Origin: Trichosphaerium sp. ATCC 40318
Taxonomy: Eukaryota > Protista > Tubulinea
Length of the DNA stretch: 64,000 nt
Direction: 5' to 3'
Assembly (NCBI GenBank): GCA_038496445.1
Contig: JALMLS010000354.1
Coordinates: 434,001 to 498,000 of the forward strand
In this document: piece after piece, positions 47,023-58,600 of the stretch
How positions within the stretch are numbered: the stretch's first letter is position 1
Layout: every line of letters starts with the position of its first letter
Made by a program: the position numbers and the translations under genes
Notes under the pieces: generated by a model
What the model saw: only the letters and a program-made list of their open reading frames with translations
Told to the model about the DNA's origin: nothing
Databases searched by the model: none

Positions 47023-50000
47023 TCATTTATATCCTCTCCCGGGTCTACTGTTGTAACCCCTTCCGACACCACCACCTAGAGAACGATAAGTAACCAAACG
47101 AACAAAAAATAGGACAAAATATCCAGATTACATACCAAGATCATGTGAAAATTGGCAATGCCTATGAGGACAATGTTTACCACCACTATCACGATAAAAT
47201 TTACATATCTCACGGCCTCTACCTATAAGCAAAAGTTAATTTGTGACAAAAAGAACCAAGAAAAGAAAAAAAGGTGTTACCTCTTCCACGGCCCGAGTTT
47301 AGCGACTGTGTGTATCTATTTTGATTACCATTTCTCTGCGCATTGTTGTGACCATTATTATTATAGTTTCCTTGTCTGGCTAAATAATGGCATAAGTCCA
47401 GAAATACAATGAAACATCGTGGTAAAGTGAAATGAACAGGAAAAAAACGCACGTGTTCCACCATTTTTACGTTTGGTTACTGGTACTACAAGTGCTCTTC
47501 CATGAACAGCTCTATGGTATCCAAGTCTATATGATTCAATAACAGACCTTCGAAGCCAATTATTTAGTTCACCATGCGTTGGAGGCTTTAAGCGAACATA
47601 TATGAAGAATTCGCTAAAACAAGTAATTACTAATTAAGGATTTGGTGTTTGTTAACTTACTCCCACGTAGATATGTTCTTAATAGTTTCAACAGCATCTC
47701 TTAAACCCCCAATCATATCTTCTGTTGGTCTACCATATCTAGCATCATAATTATTGGCTATTTTTTGCGCAGAAAGTCCAGCAGGTCTTCCTTTATAAAA
47801 ATAGTTAGAAAAAAGTCAACACATTTTCAAGATTATATGAACGCAAAACGATCTTCCAAACAGGTTTTTAAGAACGTACCTATATTCTCCAAGAAATAAA
47901 CATGAAAAGCTAAAAGATGTCGAGATACTTTTGTCAACTCGAAAGTTTTAGAAGCTCTTATATTCTCTACTGCTGGAAGAGGCTCTTGAGCAGCTAATTG
48001 ATAGCATTCCTTTGTATACCATCTAACATTACGTATGAAAGCTTCTCTCATGTACTAACAAGAAATCTTAGCACTACAAAGGCAAACAACTATAAAACTT
48101 ACCGGCACAGCAATATCCTTCCAAGCTAAAGACGATATAGTCAAAAGTGGTAAGAACTCTCCAAGAGAAGGTAGCTAAAGTAAAAATAAGAATACAGTAA
48201 TATCAATGTGCTTGACAAAGACGTCGTACAACTGCTTTGCTTCTATTCTCAACACTAACACGGAACTTTATAATCTTATTATTGATTTGTTCAACTTGTT
48301 GAGGATGCTTAGCAGCAAAGCTAATCATATATCTCTGGAATGCACAGTACCCTTCAAGAGCCTTTATAGAAGCTACAAACAAAACAAACATTAGATCAAG
48401 GAACATACAGTATGAGGGGAGGTTCCAAGTCCATACCATAGAGTGTCCCATTCATGATCTCAACAATCATTGTGTTCATCAGTTTAGGAAAAATTTTGAA
48501 TGCCATGCTTGGCGTAAACCTGTCTTTACAACAAAGTTTACTCAAAGCTTGTTTGAGCATATCCTGAGATCGTTTACCATGGTCTTTATTTATATCTAAG
48601 ACAACAAATAAGCACATTTAGGTAACCACACCGTATTAACCAACGTACACAGTGGTAACCAATGAGTGAGTTTCTCAGTTGAACCATAAACTGATGACCT
48701 TATACCTTCATCAAAAGCATGCTTCGTCATAAGCTCTAATGGAGTGCTTATAGCATGAATAACACCATTTCTGCGTCTCTTTACAACAAGACCAACACCG
48801 AGTATATCTTCTGTGAAAAGTACACGTGTATGGAAACAACGCAGTGATTCACGGATGATTTCAAGCTCTGACTTTGGTTTTACGTTTGGATTTTCCTGTT
48901 GATTTATGATTAGCACAGTTTAACTGATACTGGACGTACAACACTAAAAGGAGGCCATGGTTCGCTTGGAGTATGCTCACATAGGGTACAAGCAAAAGCG
49001 TTTGCAGTGCGTATAGCACTTGGAATACGACGTAAAATATCATCAAGTGGTCGTCCTTCGTTATCTTCAAGATCCATAAGGAACGCTAAAGAAAAGTTTA
49101 AGTCAGTTGACAGTAGCATATAAAAAGAACTGTTTTATGTTATTACCTTGCATTTGTAGCAGTATTGTTTGTACTGAGTAAGCCGAGCACCAACCAGTAG
49201 TACGCTGTTTATTATCAGAATCAAAGTAACTCTGAAAATCGCTTAATAAATCAAGACAGATCTTATCATCATGAACCTACAATACAGCATTAACAAAAAT
49301 CACGTTTTAAAATTCATCTCGAAACGCACGTGTGGGTGTGGTAAGGGTACTAAAATTGTGGCACTAGGTGGACTCGTCTAATATTTATAATTAGCACAAG
49401 CAAAACATTAAAATAAAAGCCGTACTGGATAATCCATTGGAAATTTGAGTTCAATATGAAAAATTGCGCCAGCATAAGGAGTATTTTCTAACAAGTTCGT
49501 CAGTTGAGCTTTATCAATTTGCTTATAAAAACAAGTACCTGGTCCCTTTAAATTACCATGCCAGATGAACATATCCTCCTTTAATGACATGAGTTAGCGT
49601 GATGATCTTTTTGGTAAGATTGTACCTCTAAAGGACTTGCTGACACCAAAGGAAGTGGGTTCTTTATAATCTCTTTGTAATCACGCATAAGCGCACGTCT
49701 AGCATCAAGTAATCTTCCAGGTGTTGTAGGTTTGTTCCCTGCATCAGTTGTATCTGATAGAACAGAAGATACAGATGCTGTTAAATTCTCTCTTAACCTT
49801 TCACTATAAAACAGTCAATGATGAATACATAAAAAATAGCTGCTCGTACGTCTCAGGGTGAATCATATCTAATGATGTTCTTTGTTCAACAACATCTTGA
49901 ATAGCACCTTGAGAGAACTTGTTGAATCCACAGCGCAGTATATACAGCCTAGGTAGCACTGCAAGATCCAGTATAGCCTTTTTAAATTAAGTAAGTTTCA

Positions 50001-53000
50001 TAAAACCGAAAGAGAACAGTGTACCCTCAATAAATAATCGTCAATCTTTTTACAATTTGAAATATCCCATTCAGTCAACGCTTTAAACATGTACAGAGCG
50101 CTACAATGAATGAATTTAGAAAGTATTCTCAACGTTAATATTACATACTCTTGAGTAGGCGTATTTACATGGGTACAGGTACGCATGAAGAGCTTAGACA
50201 AAAGAGGGCATCCCTTAGAGGTAAGTGAGTAGTTTAATTCATGATGCAGATAAATCTTATCGTGCACGTACCATTGCAAGAGGAGACACGTCACCAATTA
50301 GTAAGCAATGGCTACAGTTTAATGTGTCCAATTTATGCAACTTTGCAACGTGTTCAAGCGTGGATACAAGATTACAACCAGAAATATCCAAATCGATTAA
50401 ATTAGGATTAAACTCTGCAATAGTATCCAGCGCTTTATCCGTGATATTTACGCACCTATTAAGACCATCAGTTAATTGCAATAAACACATATTAGACTTA
50501 CTTGGAAATGTTCAGCTTTACTAACTTTGGACAATGTATCGCAACAGACATTATAGCACCATCATGAATATCACAACCGCTACAATTAAACTCCTTCAAA
50601 GAACCAGCAACTTTTGCCAAATGCTGCAATGCAATATCACTTACTTTGCACTTTGATATATTAACTAAAAAATGAATAAACAACATGTTAGATTATTACA
50701 CAAATACGAACCTTGTTCAAGTTTTTGACCAATAGAAAATAAGTTTTGTAAACCATCATGAGAAACACGTGTTGATGATAAATTAATAGACCGAATATTC
50801 AGAAGAAGTTGACCCATTGTGCGTAACAGAACATCATCAACAAGTGTATTGTTCAATGCAACACATTCCAATTTTCTATTAGCTTGTATGAATTGCTGTA
50901 GTGGGCCCGTGAAGCCATCTTTGTAAATAGAAGAAAGGCCTAAAAAAAAACTCAACAAAAAAAATACGTTCGTTTCAATTTTCGTACTTGTGAAGTCTAT
51001 GCTCTTCAGCGATTCAAAGTGTATCAGGTACTGTAAAGAAGCATGTGATAGGTTATGACACCTCTTTGCAGAAAGACTACGGAGTGTTTTGCAGGTTTGA
51101 AGTGCCAGTAATGCATCATCATCAAAAGCATTACATTCGTCAACATGAAGCTCCTGAAGTGACGGCGCAGAAGACAACAGTGCCCTAACACTCTCACTAT
51201 TGAAGGACTTACTTCCACTAACTTTAAATACACTCAAAGATGGCATTTTAACCGCCCCGAAGGTACCACAGAAGTCCTTACTAAGCATCGTGTTAATAAC
51301 AGCCAAAACGGAAGAACTACTTACTTGTTACAGTACAAGCCAGATAAATCAAGGTACTCCAACGTACTCTGAGCCTTGAATGAACGAAAGTATGTAATAA
51401 AGCTAGGTGCAAAGCTATTATAAGATACATCAAGCCAAGAAAGTTTTATACAATTACGTTGTAGATGCTTCAATGAATCAACACTGAGATTACTACATCT
51501 TGAAATATCAAGTTTCTTTAAATTAGAAAACTTTGATACTTTAAGTATAGTTGCATCAGTTATATGAGGACACTCTAAGTTAAACGTATATTAGCTTTCT
51601 CAGGTATAAATATATTAATTGCGTACCTTTGAGGACAAGTTCAGTAGCAAAAAGGCAATTGATAAGTGCACCTCCTTTAAAAGTGCAACGTGTGAAATCA
51701 AATATATTTAGTGATGCAATGTTCTTTGTTAACGTTGTGATACTTCTTGTAGTAATATACTTTTTGTTGAACGCATGTGTTGTGTTGAACGTATCCCTCT
51801 TTTCTGAATATCGAAGTACTTCAATAACAGCAGCAAGCTCAGTATCAACAAGTTCTTCATGCCAACTTGCAATCCAAGAAAAATCACCATCAGGTCCCAA
51901 AAGAATAGCTTTCCTAAAGCAGTAACCTAGGTACATATTAACGTCAATGCTACCTTCCTCATTACATAACCAAAACAACATACCAGCTTTCTCATAAAGT
52001 TTATCGTTATTGTTCCTGTGAGCCATCTTAATAAGCAAGTGTGCACGTCTAATATAACCCTCAACATATTTTGGTAATCGTGTAATAACAGAAGCATAAC
52101 ATTCATCTGCAAGTTCTGAAAGCTGATCCTGGTATCTCCATGCATCAATATCTTGTAGTGTATTTCCCAAATTAAATAGACCAACATTGTTACGTGCAAT
52201 ATTATATTTTTCAAAAGCTTTCTTGAAGTACGTATAACAGTCGTCATCACCTTTGATGAAAGAAAAGTTAGAACAATCACAAAGGCAAAGGAACTTCAAG
52301 CATACCTGTTTTTAGGCTTCCAAGCTTTACTAGTACATCAGCGTAGCTATTAAGCATGAAAGTATTATCAGGAGTACTTCTTATGGCCTTGGAATAGTGT
52401 GAGCGGTAATTAAAGAAAGATGAAGTTACCTGCTCAAATTTCGACATAGCCAATCGGAATAACCGATCATTGTGTGATCCTTGAGACTTCAGACCACCTG
52501 CAGCTGCCTTCATTTGGTCCATTGCCATTATAGACAATGCATTAGCTTCTGCCATTTGTGTAATATTCATATTCTTTACAAGAACAGACATCTGAACGAG
52601 CATAAGTAGTTGCAATAACACAGCAAACTAGTTTTTCTTTTCTAACCTTTTTAATATCTGGAATTACTAGTTTGAAGTCATCTGGGCTCTTTTCAAGTTC
52701 TTTTCTTGCTTCCTTTGTTAATTTAATCCCTGTTAGTTGTTGTATACGCTGGAAAAGCATATACATATCAACTGAAGACTTTAAATCGAACGAAGGACTC
52801 TCTTCTTCTTCAGAAAGAGAATCAACAAAGTATTCCGCCAAAGCTATTTTATAAAGTTAACTACTGGACTCAAAAAGTTTACCTCTTCATGTACCTTCCC
52901 TTAAATCCTCTCTCCAAAAGGTTTTAGAATCGTCACTCCAGCCAAGAACCATGTTGAAGAACTCAAGCGCCAAAGCAAAGAAGATATCTGTTGCTACAGT

Positions 53001-55101
53001 TCTAGAAGTACGAACAAGGTTTCTAAACTTCTCACCAAGCATGCGTTTAATTATTCTATAGTCAATAAGCAATACAACCCTCCTAGTGTACTTTCAGTAC
53101 CTGGCGATCATGTCAAGCAAAATCTCATCTTTCAGGGTTTTTGAAGTCACGTGGCTCCTTAATTTTCCAAGGTACCGAACATTTACACCTTACGGCATTA
53201 GAAAAAAATAACAACCAATTTTTTGACAAGGTAGCAATTTTCAAAAAATGAAATATCCAAGACGTTGTTTTACCTTCGCGATGAATAACCTCCGTTAGTT
53301 TAGGGAGATCAGCGGATTTATTATCCTTGTAATTCTTATCAAGCCATTTTGCAAGATTCACAATAATAGTAGAAAAAAGGTAGTCTGTGGCTTCCTGTAC
53401 TTCACTAACTCAAATGTTAGCAAAACAAACATAAGGAGCAATTGTCGCTAAACTTTCTCCTTTAAAACTCACGCATTTATTGCATCATAATCAGGATCAT
53501 ACTGGCTGAATCTAGAGAATGCATCACTAGACAATGGCTTTGGATACTGCTTAATAAATTCAGGCCTAAAAACCTTTTTTTTAAGTTAGTGTTACTTAGT
53601 ATTTACTACAACTTCGTTGGATATCCAAGAAAGTGTACCTTGTATAAGAATGTCTTCTTAACATTCTCCTCAGCAGTAGGAGGGAAAACGCGAGCAAAGT
53701 CTATCTGTACAAAGAATAAATACAAGAAAAAGAAATTTGGCAAAAATTAGCCAAGTTTAGGAACTTTCACCTACCACATAAAATCGTCCATCATCACCAC
53801 GATGACCTTCTATATCTATAGGTCCATATAAAAGCTTCATGTTATCCTTTTTGCCGCAAAGATGACCTTTAATGTTCAATTTTTTTGCAGCATTTCGCAT
53901 CTGAAGTTAAGATGTTAAAGAAACAAAGATATTATAGATGTAACCGCACCAATTCCCTCATAACATCGTTCTCATCCCAAACATGACAACCACCATCAGC
54001 GCTACCATATACGAGCGTTTTTTTGTGGACTGGAAGTATTGACATTGCCACAAGACGAAACCCAAGATAATCGATCTGAGGTATTAATTAGTTCTTTGTA
54101 TACACTACACCAGCAATACTAACCACAGCCATCATTGGTACATGTAACCCCTCACATGCGTAATACCTCATTAATGCTTTTAACTCCAAACTTCCTGTCT
54201 AGAAGCGTCATAAATAATACCGAAACAACAAATAAATACTGACACGTGCCTTCATGGCATAAAAGTCACCTCCGTAAATGTTCAAAAAATCTGTTTGGAA
54301 CTTGAATAAAATGCCATTGTATACATATTTCTTGCCTAAGGTTGTATAAGCGTTACAAAATGCAACAAAGGTGGTAAATAATTAATTCGTAGAGTGAAAA
54401 AAATTCATAATGAGAAATTTCTCATAGTGACACTTGTGAGCGGACATTGGCGTTCAGGATGTGTACGTGCCTCCTGCAGAACCACCTACATCTATAGGAT
54501 GTATTGTTTTGAATTCATCTGGCAGAAAGGCTTCAGAAATGATAATCTTTCCGTAGCGTTTTGCTATCTTTACAAAATCTTTACTGAGTGATGATAGCTT
54601 GTGGTATTTGGTTAGACGCGCTTCCTTTGTATCTTCAGGGAATTCAAGAAGGCGCTGGTGTAAATAAATCAATAAAAACGAATCGTTTGAGTCATAACAG
54701 CACTAGCGTTACCTGAAAGTCTTTATTCCAATCAACAGGTGAACCTGTGCTAACTGTTTGCTTAGCATCGGCGATATTAGCCTTTGGATATGGCGTAGTG
54801 GTAGATTCCGCCTTAGACATGGCCGTGTTTGCATTCTTTAAAGAATAACGTTCTACGCCTGTGTAGATGTACTGTACACCTCCATTATTAGCTCCCACAT
54901 ACTGGTAAAGATTGGGAGAGGTGGTAGAGGCGGCTGAAGGAACACCTAGGGAAGGCTCCCCTGCAACAATTAGAAATATGTTAAAACAGCCTAACACGCA
55001 CCAAGCGCGGTTTCATCGAAATCTGCTGGTGTTATAAGGTTAAAATCGTCTGGCGTTGAAGTTGTAGCACTTAGGTCGTAACCGCCGTGGTCAGAAGCCA
55101 T
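47023..55101 (-). CDS. Large multidomain protein: Clu domain, helical/TPR-like region, LRRs, UBC (E2) domain, CCCH zinc finger, RGG tail
   Basis: Clu motifs (DFVKIAKRYGKIIISE, GGSAGG.KY, IDYLGFRLVAMSILP, YGSADGG, DIEGHRGDDGRFYV.DFARVFPP, HREG). Many LRRs. UBC segment RALMRDY...WHGNLKGP.NTPY.G..FH..L.FP.DYP...HPH...ICLDLL. Then CKFYRDSGGKHCPHRHCQFSH. The splice junctions checked keep the frame. Confidence 0.75.
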
Positions 55102-55609: not shown

Positions 55610-58600
55610 ATGGTACATCTTGTCTCTACGAATTTTTTTATGCTTACTGTAAGGCTAGGCGGTTACAGGCGCACAAGCCGCGCAACAGGTAAGGGATCAG
55701 TACAACACGCAGTTTTTGACCGTACAATAGGGCGTGGAAGACATGGTGTTGATTTCTGCGGTAGACGAGCCTTCTATCGTTGAAAATATTAAAAAGCGCT
55801 ATGACCACGATCAAATTTACGTAAGTAGCTATTTAAACTCGTAGGAGCATTTTGAAGTTTAAACGTCGGAAATACATTTTGTTCTTGTAGTAAATGGGGC
55901 ACAGGCGTTAGCAATAATGCCATAGTGCCTGAATTAGCGTAAATAACTCGAGAAAAACACTCACAAACTCATAGACCAACATCGGTGCTGTGTTGATCTC
56001 GGTGAACCCTTTTCGCTGGATTAAAGGTATAACTGATGACGAGCAAGTCGAAGAATACAGAGGGCGCTTTCGTCACGAGCTACCACCAAACGTTTTCGCA
56101 TTGGCAGAAGAGGCTTACCGCTCAGTAAAAGGTGAACAAATGAACCAATGCGTTATTATCACGTACGTTAGAGCGCTTACAGCATTTTTTGAGCGTAGTA
56201 TAACGCAGTTTTATTGAAATTGTGCAAAGTTTGGGTAATCGTTAGAGCAACATTTCATCACCCTCAAACAGCAGTAAAACCAGTAATTTTTTCTATCACT
56301 TGACAATCAAACCAAAAACAATTAAAAAAAAAGCCAAAAACGTAAACGCCATCTAACGCACTCAATTTATAGTGGTGAATCTGGAGCTGGAAAGACTGTA
56401 GCTGCAAAATTGATTATGAAGTATGTTGCTGCAGTGTCAAGTAATTCCGAAGAGATTCAATACGTAAAACAAGTAATCCTCGATTCAAACCCTGTACTCG
56501 AGGCTTTCGGTAATGCCAAGACATTGCGTAACAATAACTCTTCCCGTTTTGTGCGTCCCTTTTCTCGTTTACTCCACTTTAACTTTTGTTTTTGTATTTT
56601 TTTTGTTTTTTTGTTCTGCTTGGTACACAAAATTGTTCTGATTGCTTTTATATAGGGTAAATATTTTGATATTCGCTTTAACAGATATGGTGACCCATGT
56701 GGTGGATTTATTACAACTTGTACGTCAGTTCAATTTGTGAAGTTTTTTTTCAGAATATAAAATTATTTTTTGGTATTCTTCTTTTGTTGTCTGTCAAGTT
56801 GCTAATTATTTTCTCTTCTAGACTTGTTGGAAAAATCTCGCGTTACGAGTCAGTTGAAGGGCGAAAGAAACTTTCACATTTTCTACCAAATTCTTAATGG
56901 TTCTACACAACAAGAAGTCGGTATGTTTTTTTTTTTCTTGTATTTCTTGTAGATTTTTTTGAGTTAATTTTTTTGTAGACGAGCTTCAATTATACTCCCC
57001 AGAGTACTTTAGCTACCTAGCTGGTTCTGGATGTTACACTGTAGACTCTATTGATGATGCTGAGGAATACGCTGAAGTCCGAAAGGGTTTTAATACTCTT
57101 GGTTTCCCAGCCACTGGTAAATTTTTATTTTTATTCAAAGTATATTCGCTAGTTCGTGTCTAATATTTTTTCACAGAGGTACAAGCTATTATCAGATTGT
57201 TGGCGGGTATTTTACATTTGGGTAATATTCAATTTCAAGAAAATGCTCAAAGCCAGAGTTCCGTCGTTGACCAGAACCCAGTAAACCTCGCTGCTGGTCT
57301 CTTCAAGGTAAACATTAAAATCTTTTTTTGTGTTTGACTTGCTGTTCTCGTTCACAAATTTTCTGTAATTAACTTTTTCAAAATAGGTTAACCCTGAGGC
57401 TCTCTGCAATTGCTTGCTTACACGTCGTATTACTACCGGTGGTCGTGGTGGTGGTTCCGAGTACGATGTACCAAATAACAACACTAAGGCAACTGCTGCA
57501 CGTGATGCTCTCAGTAAAGCTATGTACTCTCGTATGTTCGACAGAATTGTTGCTGTTACAAATGTTGCTCTTGAAAAGAAAAAGCTCCAACACTCTTGTG
57601 TTATTGGTGTATTAGATATTTATGGCTTTGAGATTTTCGACGTACGTTCACTACTTCTACTGCTTGAGTATTTCCGAGGGAGATCCCGAGGGATTTTTTT
57701 TTCACCTTTTTGACTTTGTGTTTTTGTCGGCTTCATTCTTACTTCTGTGTTAGAACAACGGCTTCGAACAGTTCTGTATCAACTTTGTGAACGAAAAACT
57801 TCAACAGTACTTCATTCAATTGACGTTGAAGAAAGAACAAGAAGAATATAACGATGAGGGTATTCAATGGACTCCTATCAAGTTTTTCAATAACCAAATT
57901 GTGTGTGATCTTATTGAAGCTAAGGTATGTGTTGTTGTTACTTTGCTGGTGGAATTTGTCATAGTTCTAATGATTTGTAGCGTCCTCCTGGTATTTTCTC
58001 TGTTCTTGATGATGTATGCGCAACCATGCACTCTGAAGAAGCTGATGCTGCTGATCTCAAGTTCCTCGACAAGGCTGGTGGTTTCTTCAGCGGAAATCTT
58101 CATTTCCGTAAACTCAAGAACGCTTTTGAAGTCAAGCACTACGCTGGATCTGTCACTTACGAAACACGCGGTTTCTGCGAGAAGAATAAGGATATTTTGA
58201 ATCCTGATATCATCAAAGTTATGAAATCCTCACAATTGCAGTACTTGGTCGAGCTCTTCCCAGAAGATGTTACCCAAAAGCAGAGTAGGCGTCCAACTAC
58301 CGTCGGTTATAAAATCAAGACATCTGCAGCTGATTTGATCAACCAGTTGTCTCAATGTCAACCTCATTACATTCGTTGTATCAAACCGAATGAAACAAAA
58401 CAACCTAAAGATTGGGATGCTAAGCGCGTACAGCATCAAGTAAGTATTGTGGAGTTACTTTAAGACCATTTTATTCTTATAAATATGTTTAGGTCCAATA
58501 CCTTGGTATTCTCGAGAATGTTCGTGTATGTCGTGCCGGTTACTGTTACAGTACGTGTTTTTTTTTTATTTTGTTTTTTTCAGAATTTGCTTTTTTTTTT

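Follow-up and report, generated by a model that had tools for sequence, protein, structure and literature searches.

The E3 module of UBR4, named hemiRING-UZI, was described in 2024 as an unprecedented element which is invisible in the primary sequence (PMC10873205). It consists of a "hemiRING", which holds a single C2HC zinc site, and of a UZI bundle of 11 helices against which the hemiRING packs; the module binds the ubiquitin-conjugating enzyme (E2) UBE2A and modestly activates the ubiquitin-loaded form of the E2, E2~Ub, and the region of UBR4 which lies N-terminal to the hemiRING adds affinity for the E2 (PMC10873205). Amoebozoa are known to join the CLU domain to signalling domains, as in the Dictyostelium fusions CldA, CldB and ComB (PMC2906285). 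Here we describe a gene of Trichosphaerium sp. ATCC 40318 (contig JALMLS010000354.1), found on the minus strand of a stretch of 64,000 nucleotides (nt) which was analysed as a whole and is called the window below; positions given without a contig name refer to it. We think it rather probable that this one gene encodes a self-contained E2-E3 ubiquitin ligase of ~1,935 residues, belonging to a conserved amoebozoan family. A CLU domain, an eIF3_p135-like domain, helices of tetratricopeptide repeat (TPR)-like type, leucine-rich repeats (LRRs) of FBXL type and a UBC (E2) domain follow one another in the protein, and are followed by a domain which we predict to be a UBR4-like hemiRING-UZI module and by a variable tail.

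Several described systems share parts of this architecture. The hybrids UBE2O and BIRC6 are also large single chains in which an active UBC domain is combined with substrate-binding regions, but the amoebozoan family has no BIR or CR1-3 regions, its UBC domain is class-I-like with an HPH motif, and we know of no RING-type module adjoining the UBC domain of UBE2O or BIRC6. The protein would work like an E2/E3 hybrid but is not a relative of these two. With the CLU family (CLUH, Clu1/TIF31, Dictyostelium CluA, plant FRIENDLY) it shares the succession of PF13236, PF12807 and helical repeats, and by the first two domains, as recognised in sequence, the fusion protein is a member of the CLU superfamily. 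It differs from this family by the lack of Clu_N and of canonical TPRs, and by a C-terminal half made of the LRRs, the UBC domain and the predicted E3 module. No SH2 or Rab domain is found in it.

A first reading of the locus, made from the sequence alone, had not recognised the architecture. Our literature searches for a CLU-LRR-UBC-E3 architecture likewise returned no description of it, only the work on Dictyostelium CldA/CldB and general surveys. This genome is nevertheless not alone in having the fusion, which public protein sets of several Amoebozoa already contain without a name of its own; the annotation given to family proteins there is "hypothetical", "Clu domain-containing" or "ubiquitin-protein ligase".

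A single spliced gene of a conserved family

The gene shows open segments alternating with short gaps that contain stops, in DNA of 35-40% G+C (47023-55101). We curated the exon chain by hand against RNA joints and homologues, as automatic chaining over-spliced or misframed the CLU and UBC regions. Curation first gave 40 exons; the alignment of homologues then added an intron of 51 nt in the UBC region. The resulting model has 41 exons and 1,935 codons plus a stop, with no internal stop. The start codon, the first intron and the first two exons were placed by open reading frame (ORF) and splice-site inference only. The model is colinear with the orthologues P0018, P0021 and P0026, and the orthologue alignments begin near residues 99-141. 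Base differences found in other sequencing runs are synonymous in the frame of the model in 15 cases out of 19 and are scattered over all the domains.

Contigs from four public RNA runs (three studies) were aligned to positions 47023-53000. The pieces which these contigs skip all end in CT..AC on the plus strand, which reads GT..AG on the minus strand. This means that the contigs are spliced transcripts of the minus-strand gene. Every one of the 15 displayed joints agrees with exon borders of the model: 14 are introns of the model and one is a splice of 52 nt within exon 13, to which we return below. The RNA-confirmed introns are 42-89 nt long, begin with GTA or GTG and have a CTAAC-like branch site. 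Record 11 of run X3 (2,339 nt) goes from 51629 to beyond 53000 and, by exon arithmetic, to ~54945, that is through the CLU domain. Record 12 of X5 and record 7 of X2 join the helical region to the first LRR exons; the start of record 2 of X1 falls precisely on 49803, where the first UBC exon has its acceptor, and five more letters lie upstream; and record 1 of X1 and record 10 of X3 span the entire domain after the UBC as well as the tail, the introns on either side of the CCCH finger being removed in both (joints 47219>47278 and 47073>47134). In X2 record 5, the intron 48373-48436, which is removed in X1 and X3, is left unspliced, through intron retention or because the contig derives from pre-mRNA. 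The splice sites of the model are canonical, save for a probable GC-AG intron at 54470..54336, outside the span covered by the RNA alignment. With its 135 nt (G/GCACGT) this intron is the longest of the gene, and no other choice with a good donor keeps the CLU domain in frame.

We looked for relatives by comparing the helical piece of the protein, which no Pfam family recognises, with 1.84 billion representative sequences. Only 15 matches were obtained. Searches in Pfam and the Protein Data Bank (PDB), and the structure work, were carried out on single exons of the window and on orthologues, and linked to the window by local BLAST and MAFFT alignments. Among the 15 matches, P0001 has by Pfam LRRs and UQ_con beside the helical piece, and P0002 has CLU, eIF3_p135 and LRRs beside it. 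The cluster of P0001 holds a Trinity ORF of 1,846 residues from Echinamoeba exundans, which aligns with residues 141-1930 of the window protein in one high-scoring segment pair, at 41% identity, and which bears CLU, eIF3_p135, LRRs, UQ_con and zf-CCCH. A word search with this ORF gave CLU, eIF3_p135, LRR and UQ_con together on P0021-P0026. The fusion members include proteins of Clastostelium recurvatum (2,679 residues) and Synstelium polycarpum (1,934 residues). A search for the architecture in Amoebozoa had been suggested by the first reading; the fusion was found in Echinamoeba, P0021-P0024, Clastostelium and Synstelium. The identity between fusion lineages is only ~35-45%.

In P0022, the domains from CLU through UQ_con are all carried by one ORF devoid of introns, 2,427 codons or 7.3 kb long (5788..13071 of contig L001), with unrelated genes on both sides. 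Since this is a single ORF on an assembled contig, the fusion is one polypeptide. Its presence in Tubulinea as well as in Evosea makes the fusion an old one among Amoebozoa. Hence, from the spliced contigs, the stop-free ORF of 41 exons, the Echinamoeba transcript and the ORF of P0022, we concluded that the locus is one real spliced gene, as the sequence-only reading had proposed, and that it belongs to a conserved amoebozoan family. The order CLU, helices, LRR, UBC and CCCH-RGG given by that reading is the one we find, and the two junctions it had named are canonical GT..AG introns: DDYLLR-AILDLAVL corresponds to 50024..49978, and MIHPET-ERLREN to 49849..49804.

The E2 domain and the domain which follows it

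On the window exon 49411-49593, the Pfam family UQ_con is recognised weakly, with 25.8 bits for a cutoff of 27, and on the orthologues it reaches 74-92 bits (E from 8e-21 to 4e-26). The E2s of the PDB match the same exon at the position of PYxGGxF...FPxDYP. When the UBC region of Echinamoeba is compared with the PDB, the matches are class-I E2s (UBC4, UBE2D/E, J2), with E from 5e-20 to 1e-15. A cysteine of the family aligns to the active-site cysteine of the PDB E2s; it is invariant in 11 sequences, in the context ..ICLDIL.., and the longer motif HPHVH.D.ICLD(L/I)LSD is invariant in the window and its ten homologues. The UBC cysteine would form a ubiquitin thioester in an E1-dependent manner. 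Rad6 is the E2 used by UBR ligases, and for this reason we asked whether the fused E2 derives from it. This is not supported: UBC4 and UBE2D/E score 64-75 bits (UBC4 and UBE2D 64-72) versus ~61 for Rad6/Ubc2.

The first reading had the frame run on into the UBC domain, which is correct, but had overlooked an in-frame intron and a small exon. The 17 codons at 49538..49488 are missing from all ten homologues in the alignment, and the piece has the borders GTACTT...CTGAC...TTAG. Because these residues are absent from every homologue, we took the piece as the intron of 51 nt mentioned above. The small exon is a micro-exon of 48 nt (49377..49330) which encodes TSPPSATILVPLPHPH, that is a strand of the E2 core and the HPH motif; both ORF lists and automatic chaining missed it.

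The ~330 residues after the UBC domain gave no match in Pfam (only noise at E<=10), and none among PDB sequences at E<=10, whether a single sequence or a profile was used; a search of the ESM Atlas with an exon of 82 residues from this region gave no usable match. The domain is well conserved despite this silence of the sequence databases. We built AlphaFold models of two orthologues, from 9-15 sequences. In model 1 (the Echinamoeba segment), the part after the UBC is the only confident one, with a pLDDT of ~75-94 (~75-95 over the two models). Foldseek matched this model to 8B5W, the UBR4 E3 module as solved by crystallography (E 1.2e-6, prob 1.00). VIA-align superposed 300 residues of it on residues 4833-5183 of UBR4, with Z 20.1 and a root-mean-square deviation (rmsd) of 5.0. 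Yeast Ubr1 came second, with Z 9.0-9.3 over ~250 residues, and unrelated chains did not exceed 3.6. Model 2 (the orthologue P0022, mean pLDDT 79) gave Z 19.9 over 296 residues, with an rmsd of 4.7, on the same residues of UBR4, the next row being at 4.2. Structure prediction, which the first reading had suggested, thus gave for two orthologues a domain resembling the UBR4 E3 module.

The predicted fold is like that of UBR4 over the whole resolved module (PDB 8B5W, 8BTL; residues 4833-5183, Z ~20): a small beta-rich subdomain of zinc-finger-like appearance comes before a bundle of ~11 helices. In UBR4, too, the module belongs to a giant protein of many domains and lies towards its C-terminus, with an element related to the E2 immediately N-terminal to the module. 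The amoebozoan family differs by having no detectable sequence similarity to UBR4, no UBR box and a remainder made of CLU and LRRs; moreover, UBR4 recruits UBE2A/B whereas the amoebozoan protein has its E2 covalently fused. The RING-UZI of yeast Ubr1 with Ubc2/Rad6 (PDB 7MEX, 7MEY) is similar in that a RING-like domain and a helical cap position the E2. However, the match is much weaker, and Ubr1 has a two-zinc RING, a UBR box and a separate E2. The invariant Cys/His residues of the amoebozoan region are a C-x2-C-x-H (CTLCEH) and then the Cys of CFHTR, and, judging from the alignment, these could form one C2HC zinc site.

Given that the ~330 residues are predicted to be hemiRING-UZI-like, a UBR-type E3 module would come directly after the E2 in the same fusion. 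According to the models, this module, rather than the LRRs alone, is likely to be the E3 element. The E2/E3 hybrid proposed by the sequence-only reading is thus better supported than that reading had foreseen, through a predicted fold.

The CLU half, the repeats and the tail

CLU (PF13236) is recognised by Pfam on three exons of the window with 33-39 bits (cutoff 24; E from 1e-9 to 5e-8), and on the orthologues with E from 1e-42 to 1e-61. PF12807 (eIF3_p135) is above cutoff, at the colinear position, on P0002, P0018, P0021, P0025 and P0026; it is not detected on the exons of the window alone, as single exons are too short to score. No match to Clu_N or to the TPR families was found by Pfam in full-length members (E<=0.001-0.01), a weak TPR_11 appearing on the fragment P0008 only.

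LRR families (LRR_4, LRR_1, LRR_Zer-1) match three segments of the window, 51324-51590 and 50260-50511 among them. The repeats are of the Cys-containing FBXL/RNI type, as indicated by PF25372 LRR_FBXL15 on P0022 and by PF24758 and LRR_6 on members of the family. They plausibly form a solenoid which binds substrates. The FBXL receptors have Cys-containing LRRs too, but here there is no F-box, and LRRs and ligase machinery share one chain. Indeed, no F-box is found N-terminal to the LRRs among the Pfam matches of any fusion member, and hence there is no sign of a dependence on Skp1 or cullin.

The tail of the window protein contains the C-x10-C-x4-C-x3-H finger, CKFYRDSGGKHCPHRHCQFSH, between GRGRGRGR and GRGYNSRPGRGYK, as the first reading had described it. 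Pieces of 28-35 residues containing the finger are not recognised by Pfam, although the pattern is present, and the aligned finger of Echinamoeba is recognised as zf-CCCH with 28.5 bits (cutoff 20.5; E 1.4e-6). Among the full-length members checked, only the window protein and Echinamoeba have the CCCH finger: P0022, P0023 and P0024 end with GRGLGRG without a finger, and Clastostelium and Synstelium have neither. As the finger and the RG repeats occur in some members only, the tail is an addition that varies between lineages and not a hallmark of the family. By the same token, with CCCH so restricted and RGG-like tails variable, the family does not conserve an ability to bind RNA through the tail, and the RNA guidance proposed by the first reading stays putative.

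There are also relatives with CLU and LRRs but without UBC: PPL_11271 of Heterostelium and a gene of the dictyostelid-like contig L003. The UBC-E3 half has either been lost from, or was never present in, this branch or paralogue. On the dictyostelid-like ENA contigs L003 (5376-11703) and L004, the gene with CLU, eIF3_p135, the helical piece and LRRs, and no UBC, is followed by ankyrin and kelch genes. Other partners of CLU occur in amoebozoan and metagenomic proteins: a Hint/intein-like insert with LRRs (P0027), RCC1 repeats (Balamuthia, P0031), a fascin-like domain (P0034) and Laminin_G_3 with LRRs (P0030, P0036, P0037). It seems that the CLU domain has often been put to new use in this group.

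Features of the gene are collected in Table 1. The divergent neighbour on the plus strand begins, at 55990-56214, with the motor domain of a myosin (Pfam Myosin_head, E 6.5e-17).

Table 1. Positions in the window of the gene and of the parts of its product (aa, residues of the protein)
Feature	Positions	Strand	Basis
Whole coding region	47023..55101	-	Curated model, spliced RNA contigs, orthologue colinearity
N-terminal low-complexity region, aa 1-111	54713..55101	-	ORF and splice-site inference
CLU domain, aa ~112-321, 6 exons	53678..54654	-	Pfam PF13236 on exons and orthologues
CLU-central / eIF3_p135-like region, aa ~368-494, approximate bounds	52895..53404	-	PF12807 on orthologues
52-nt "exitron" in exon 13	52713..52764	-	Contig of run X3, joint 52711>52764
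Family-specific helical TPR-like region, aa 561-831	51573..52591	-	Relatives; RNA contigs X3 record 11, X5 record 12, X2 record 7
Cys-containing FBXL/RNI-type LRRs, aa 832-1292	49850..51572	-	LRR_4, LRR_1, LRR_Zer-1; PF25372 on P0022
UBC (E2) core, aa 1328-1450, 6 exons	49072..49700	-	Pfam, PDB E2 matches, alignment
HPH codons; catalytic Cys codon	49338..49330; 49258..49256	-	Within UBC core
In-frame 51-nt intron in UBC region	49488..49538	-	Homologue alignment
Invariant C-x2-C-x-H (CTLCEH)	48973..48990	-	Invariant columns; candidate single zinc site with the Cys of CFHTR (48838..48824)
Predicted UBR4 hemiRING-UZI-like fold, aa ~1514-1836	47514..48838	-	AlphaFold2 models of orthologues, Foldseek, VIA-align; RNA contigs
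N/Q-rich, RG-rich tail with finger (47205..47143)	47026..47379	-	Pattern; alignment to Echinamoeba tail

Proposed mechanism, alternatives and meaning

As a self-contained ligase, the protein would work as follows. E1 would load ubiquitin onto the UBC cysteine; the tethered hemiRING-UZI would dock on E2~Ub and promote its discharge, in the way the UBR4 module acts with free UBE2A; and the LRR and CLU/TPR half would choose the substrate or the place of action. Speculatively, this place could be the messenger ribonucleoproteins (mRNPs) or ribosomes which make mitochondrial proteins. Here we follow the example of CLUH: the CLU half would be tied to the mRNAs of mitochondrial proteins by homology only, and an association with ribosomes would be by analogy with CLUH/Clu1 only. 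An E2 tethered to a UBR4-type activator would then be delivered by CLU/TPR, LRRs and, in some lineages, CCCH/RGG to the mRNPs or ribosomes of mitochondrial proteins, as a one-chain counterpart of animal CLUH and UBR4/SIFI. We put forward this fuller scheme as a tentative one, and it is rather doubtful.

Several observations weigh against the protein being an active ligase made from a single intact chain. In every member, the HPN motif of E2s has become HPH, Asn being replaced by His. The order of the putative zinc ligands is C-x2-C-x-H...C, versus C-x2-C...H-x2-C in UBR4, and the spacing differs too. The UBC part of model 1 has low confidence, so that docking in cis is putative. The assignment of the E3 module is drawn from AlphaFold models of orthologues, not of the window protein, and is without support at the level of sequence. 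More generally, we infer the biochemistry of all the members, be it the thioester, activation in cis, zinc, substrates or RNA binding. As for the transcripts, 50667-51252 is without RNA contig, one open LRR frame being found there (51280..50712). The bridge from the LRRs to the UBC is deduced from depth arithmetic, which points to two contigs: one of X1 (depth 6.56) over 50390-49892, and one of X2 (depth 5.19) over 49920-49705, which would cross the LRR-to-UBC intron. Finally, a contig of run X3 splices out 52764..52713 (GT..AG), and the frameshift leads to a stop within 15 codons.

In the main alternative, either the UBC or the E3-like domain would have no catalytic role. The protein would then be a conventional E3 or scaffold, whose UBC is non-catalytic or regulatory and whose hemiRING-UZI recruits a free E2 of Rad6 or UBC4 type; or else the UBC would be active and the hemiRING-UZI-like domain a structural remnant. 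The HPH motif, the pattern of zinc ligands and the low confidence of the folded UBC part are all in its favour, as is the fact that the E2 bound by the UBR4 module is normally a separate protein. Yet the cysteine and ICLD(L/I)L are invariant at ~35-45% identity, which would be rare in a pure scaffold. HPH is also found in UBE2W, an active E2. The E2 is moreover found at the exact position, N-terminal to the hemiRING, of the region by which UBR4 gains affinity for its E2. We consider this alternative unlikely, though it is the one to be taken most seriously.

It is less likely still that the main job of the protein is that of a CLU protein, namely binding of mRNA or ribosomes, or positioning of mitochondria, the ubiquitin half serving only for self-regulation by auto-ubiquitination and turnover. 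One would so understand the good conservation of CLU and eIF3_p135, the CCCH/RGG tail of the window protein and the existence of relatives with CLU and LRRs but no UBC (Heterostelium PPL_11271, L003). However, few parts of the family are conserved as well as the UBC and the domain after it, and neither Clu_N nor canonical TPR families are detected.

The 52-nt piece removed in X3 encodes MYMLFQRIQQLTGIKLTK, and the orthologues P0001 and P0002 carry the counterparts DMWLLLKRVQQLSGIKLT and NMRLLFTRMRQLTNVKLS. We read its splicing as that of an unproductive or regulatory "exitron"; the isoform, which may be regulated and unproductive, would give a CLU-only product. That adjacent genes were merged by reading through, or that the locus makes mainly this short CLU-only protein and a separate downstream product, is very improbable: the X3 splice with its stop ~15 codons on, the interval 50667-51252 and the fact that no one contig spans the gene would agree with it, but there are no stops and no intergenic gaps, RNA contigs link the helical region to the LRRs (X5 record 12, X2 record 7), full-length orthologous transcripts and an intron-less ORF carry the whole architecture, and orthologues conserve the motif for which the "exitron" codes.

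Coming back to the self-contained ligase, the models place a predicted hemiRING-UZI fold in a protein family unrelated to UBR4, directly after an E2 and at the position from which UBR4 gains its E2 affinity. If this is confirmed, the family would provide a naturally occurring E2-E3 fusion of the RING-related class, and a compact system in which to study the activation of E2~Ub by hemiRING-UZI; the hemiRING-UZI module would also have a greater age and mobility than has been supposed. UBR4 acts in mitochondrial import stress. As the CLU half would relate, by homology only, to the mRNAs of mitochondrial proteins, the fusion suggests a functional link between the CLU and UBR4 systems which can be tested.

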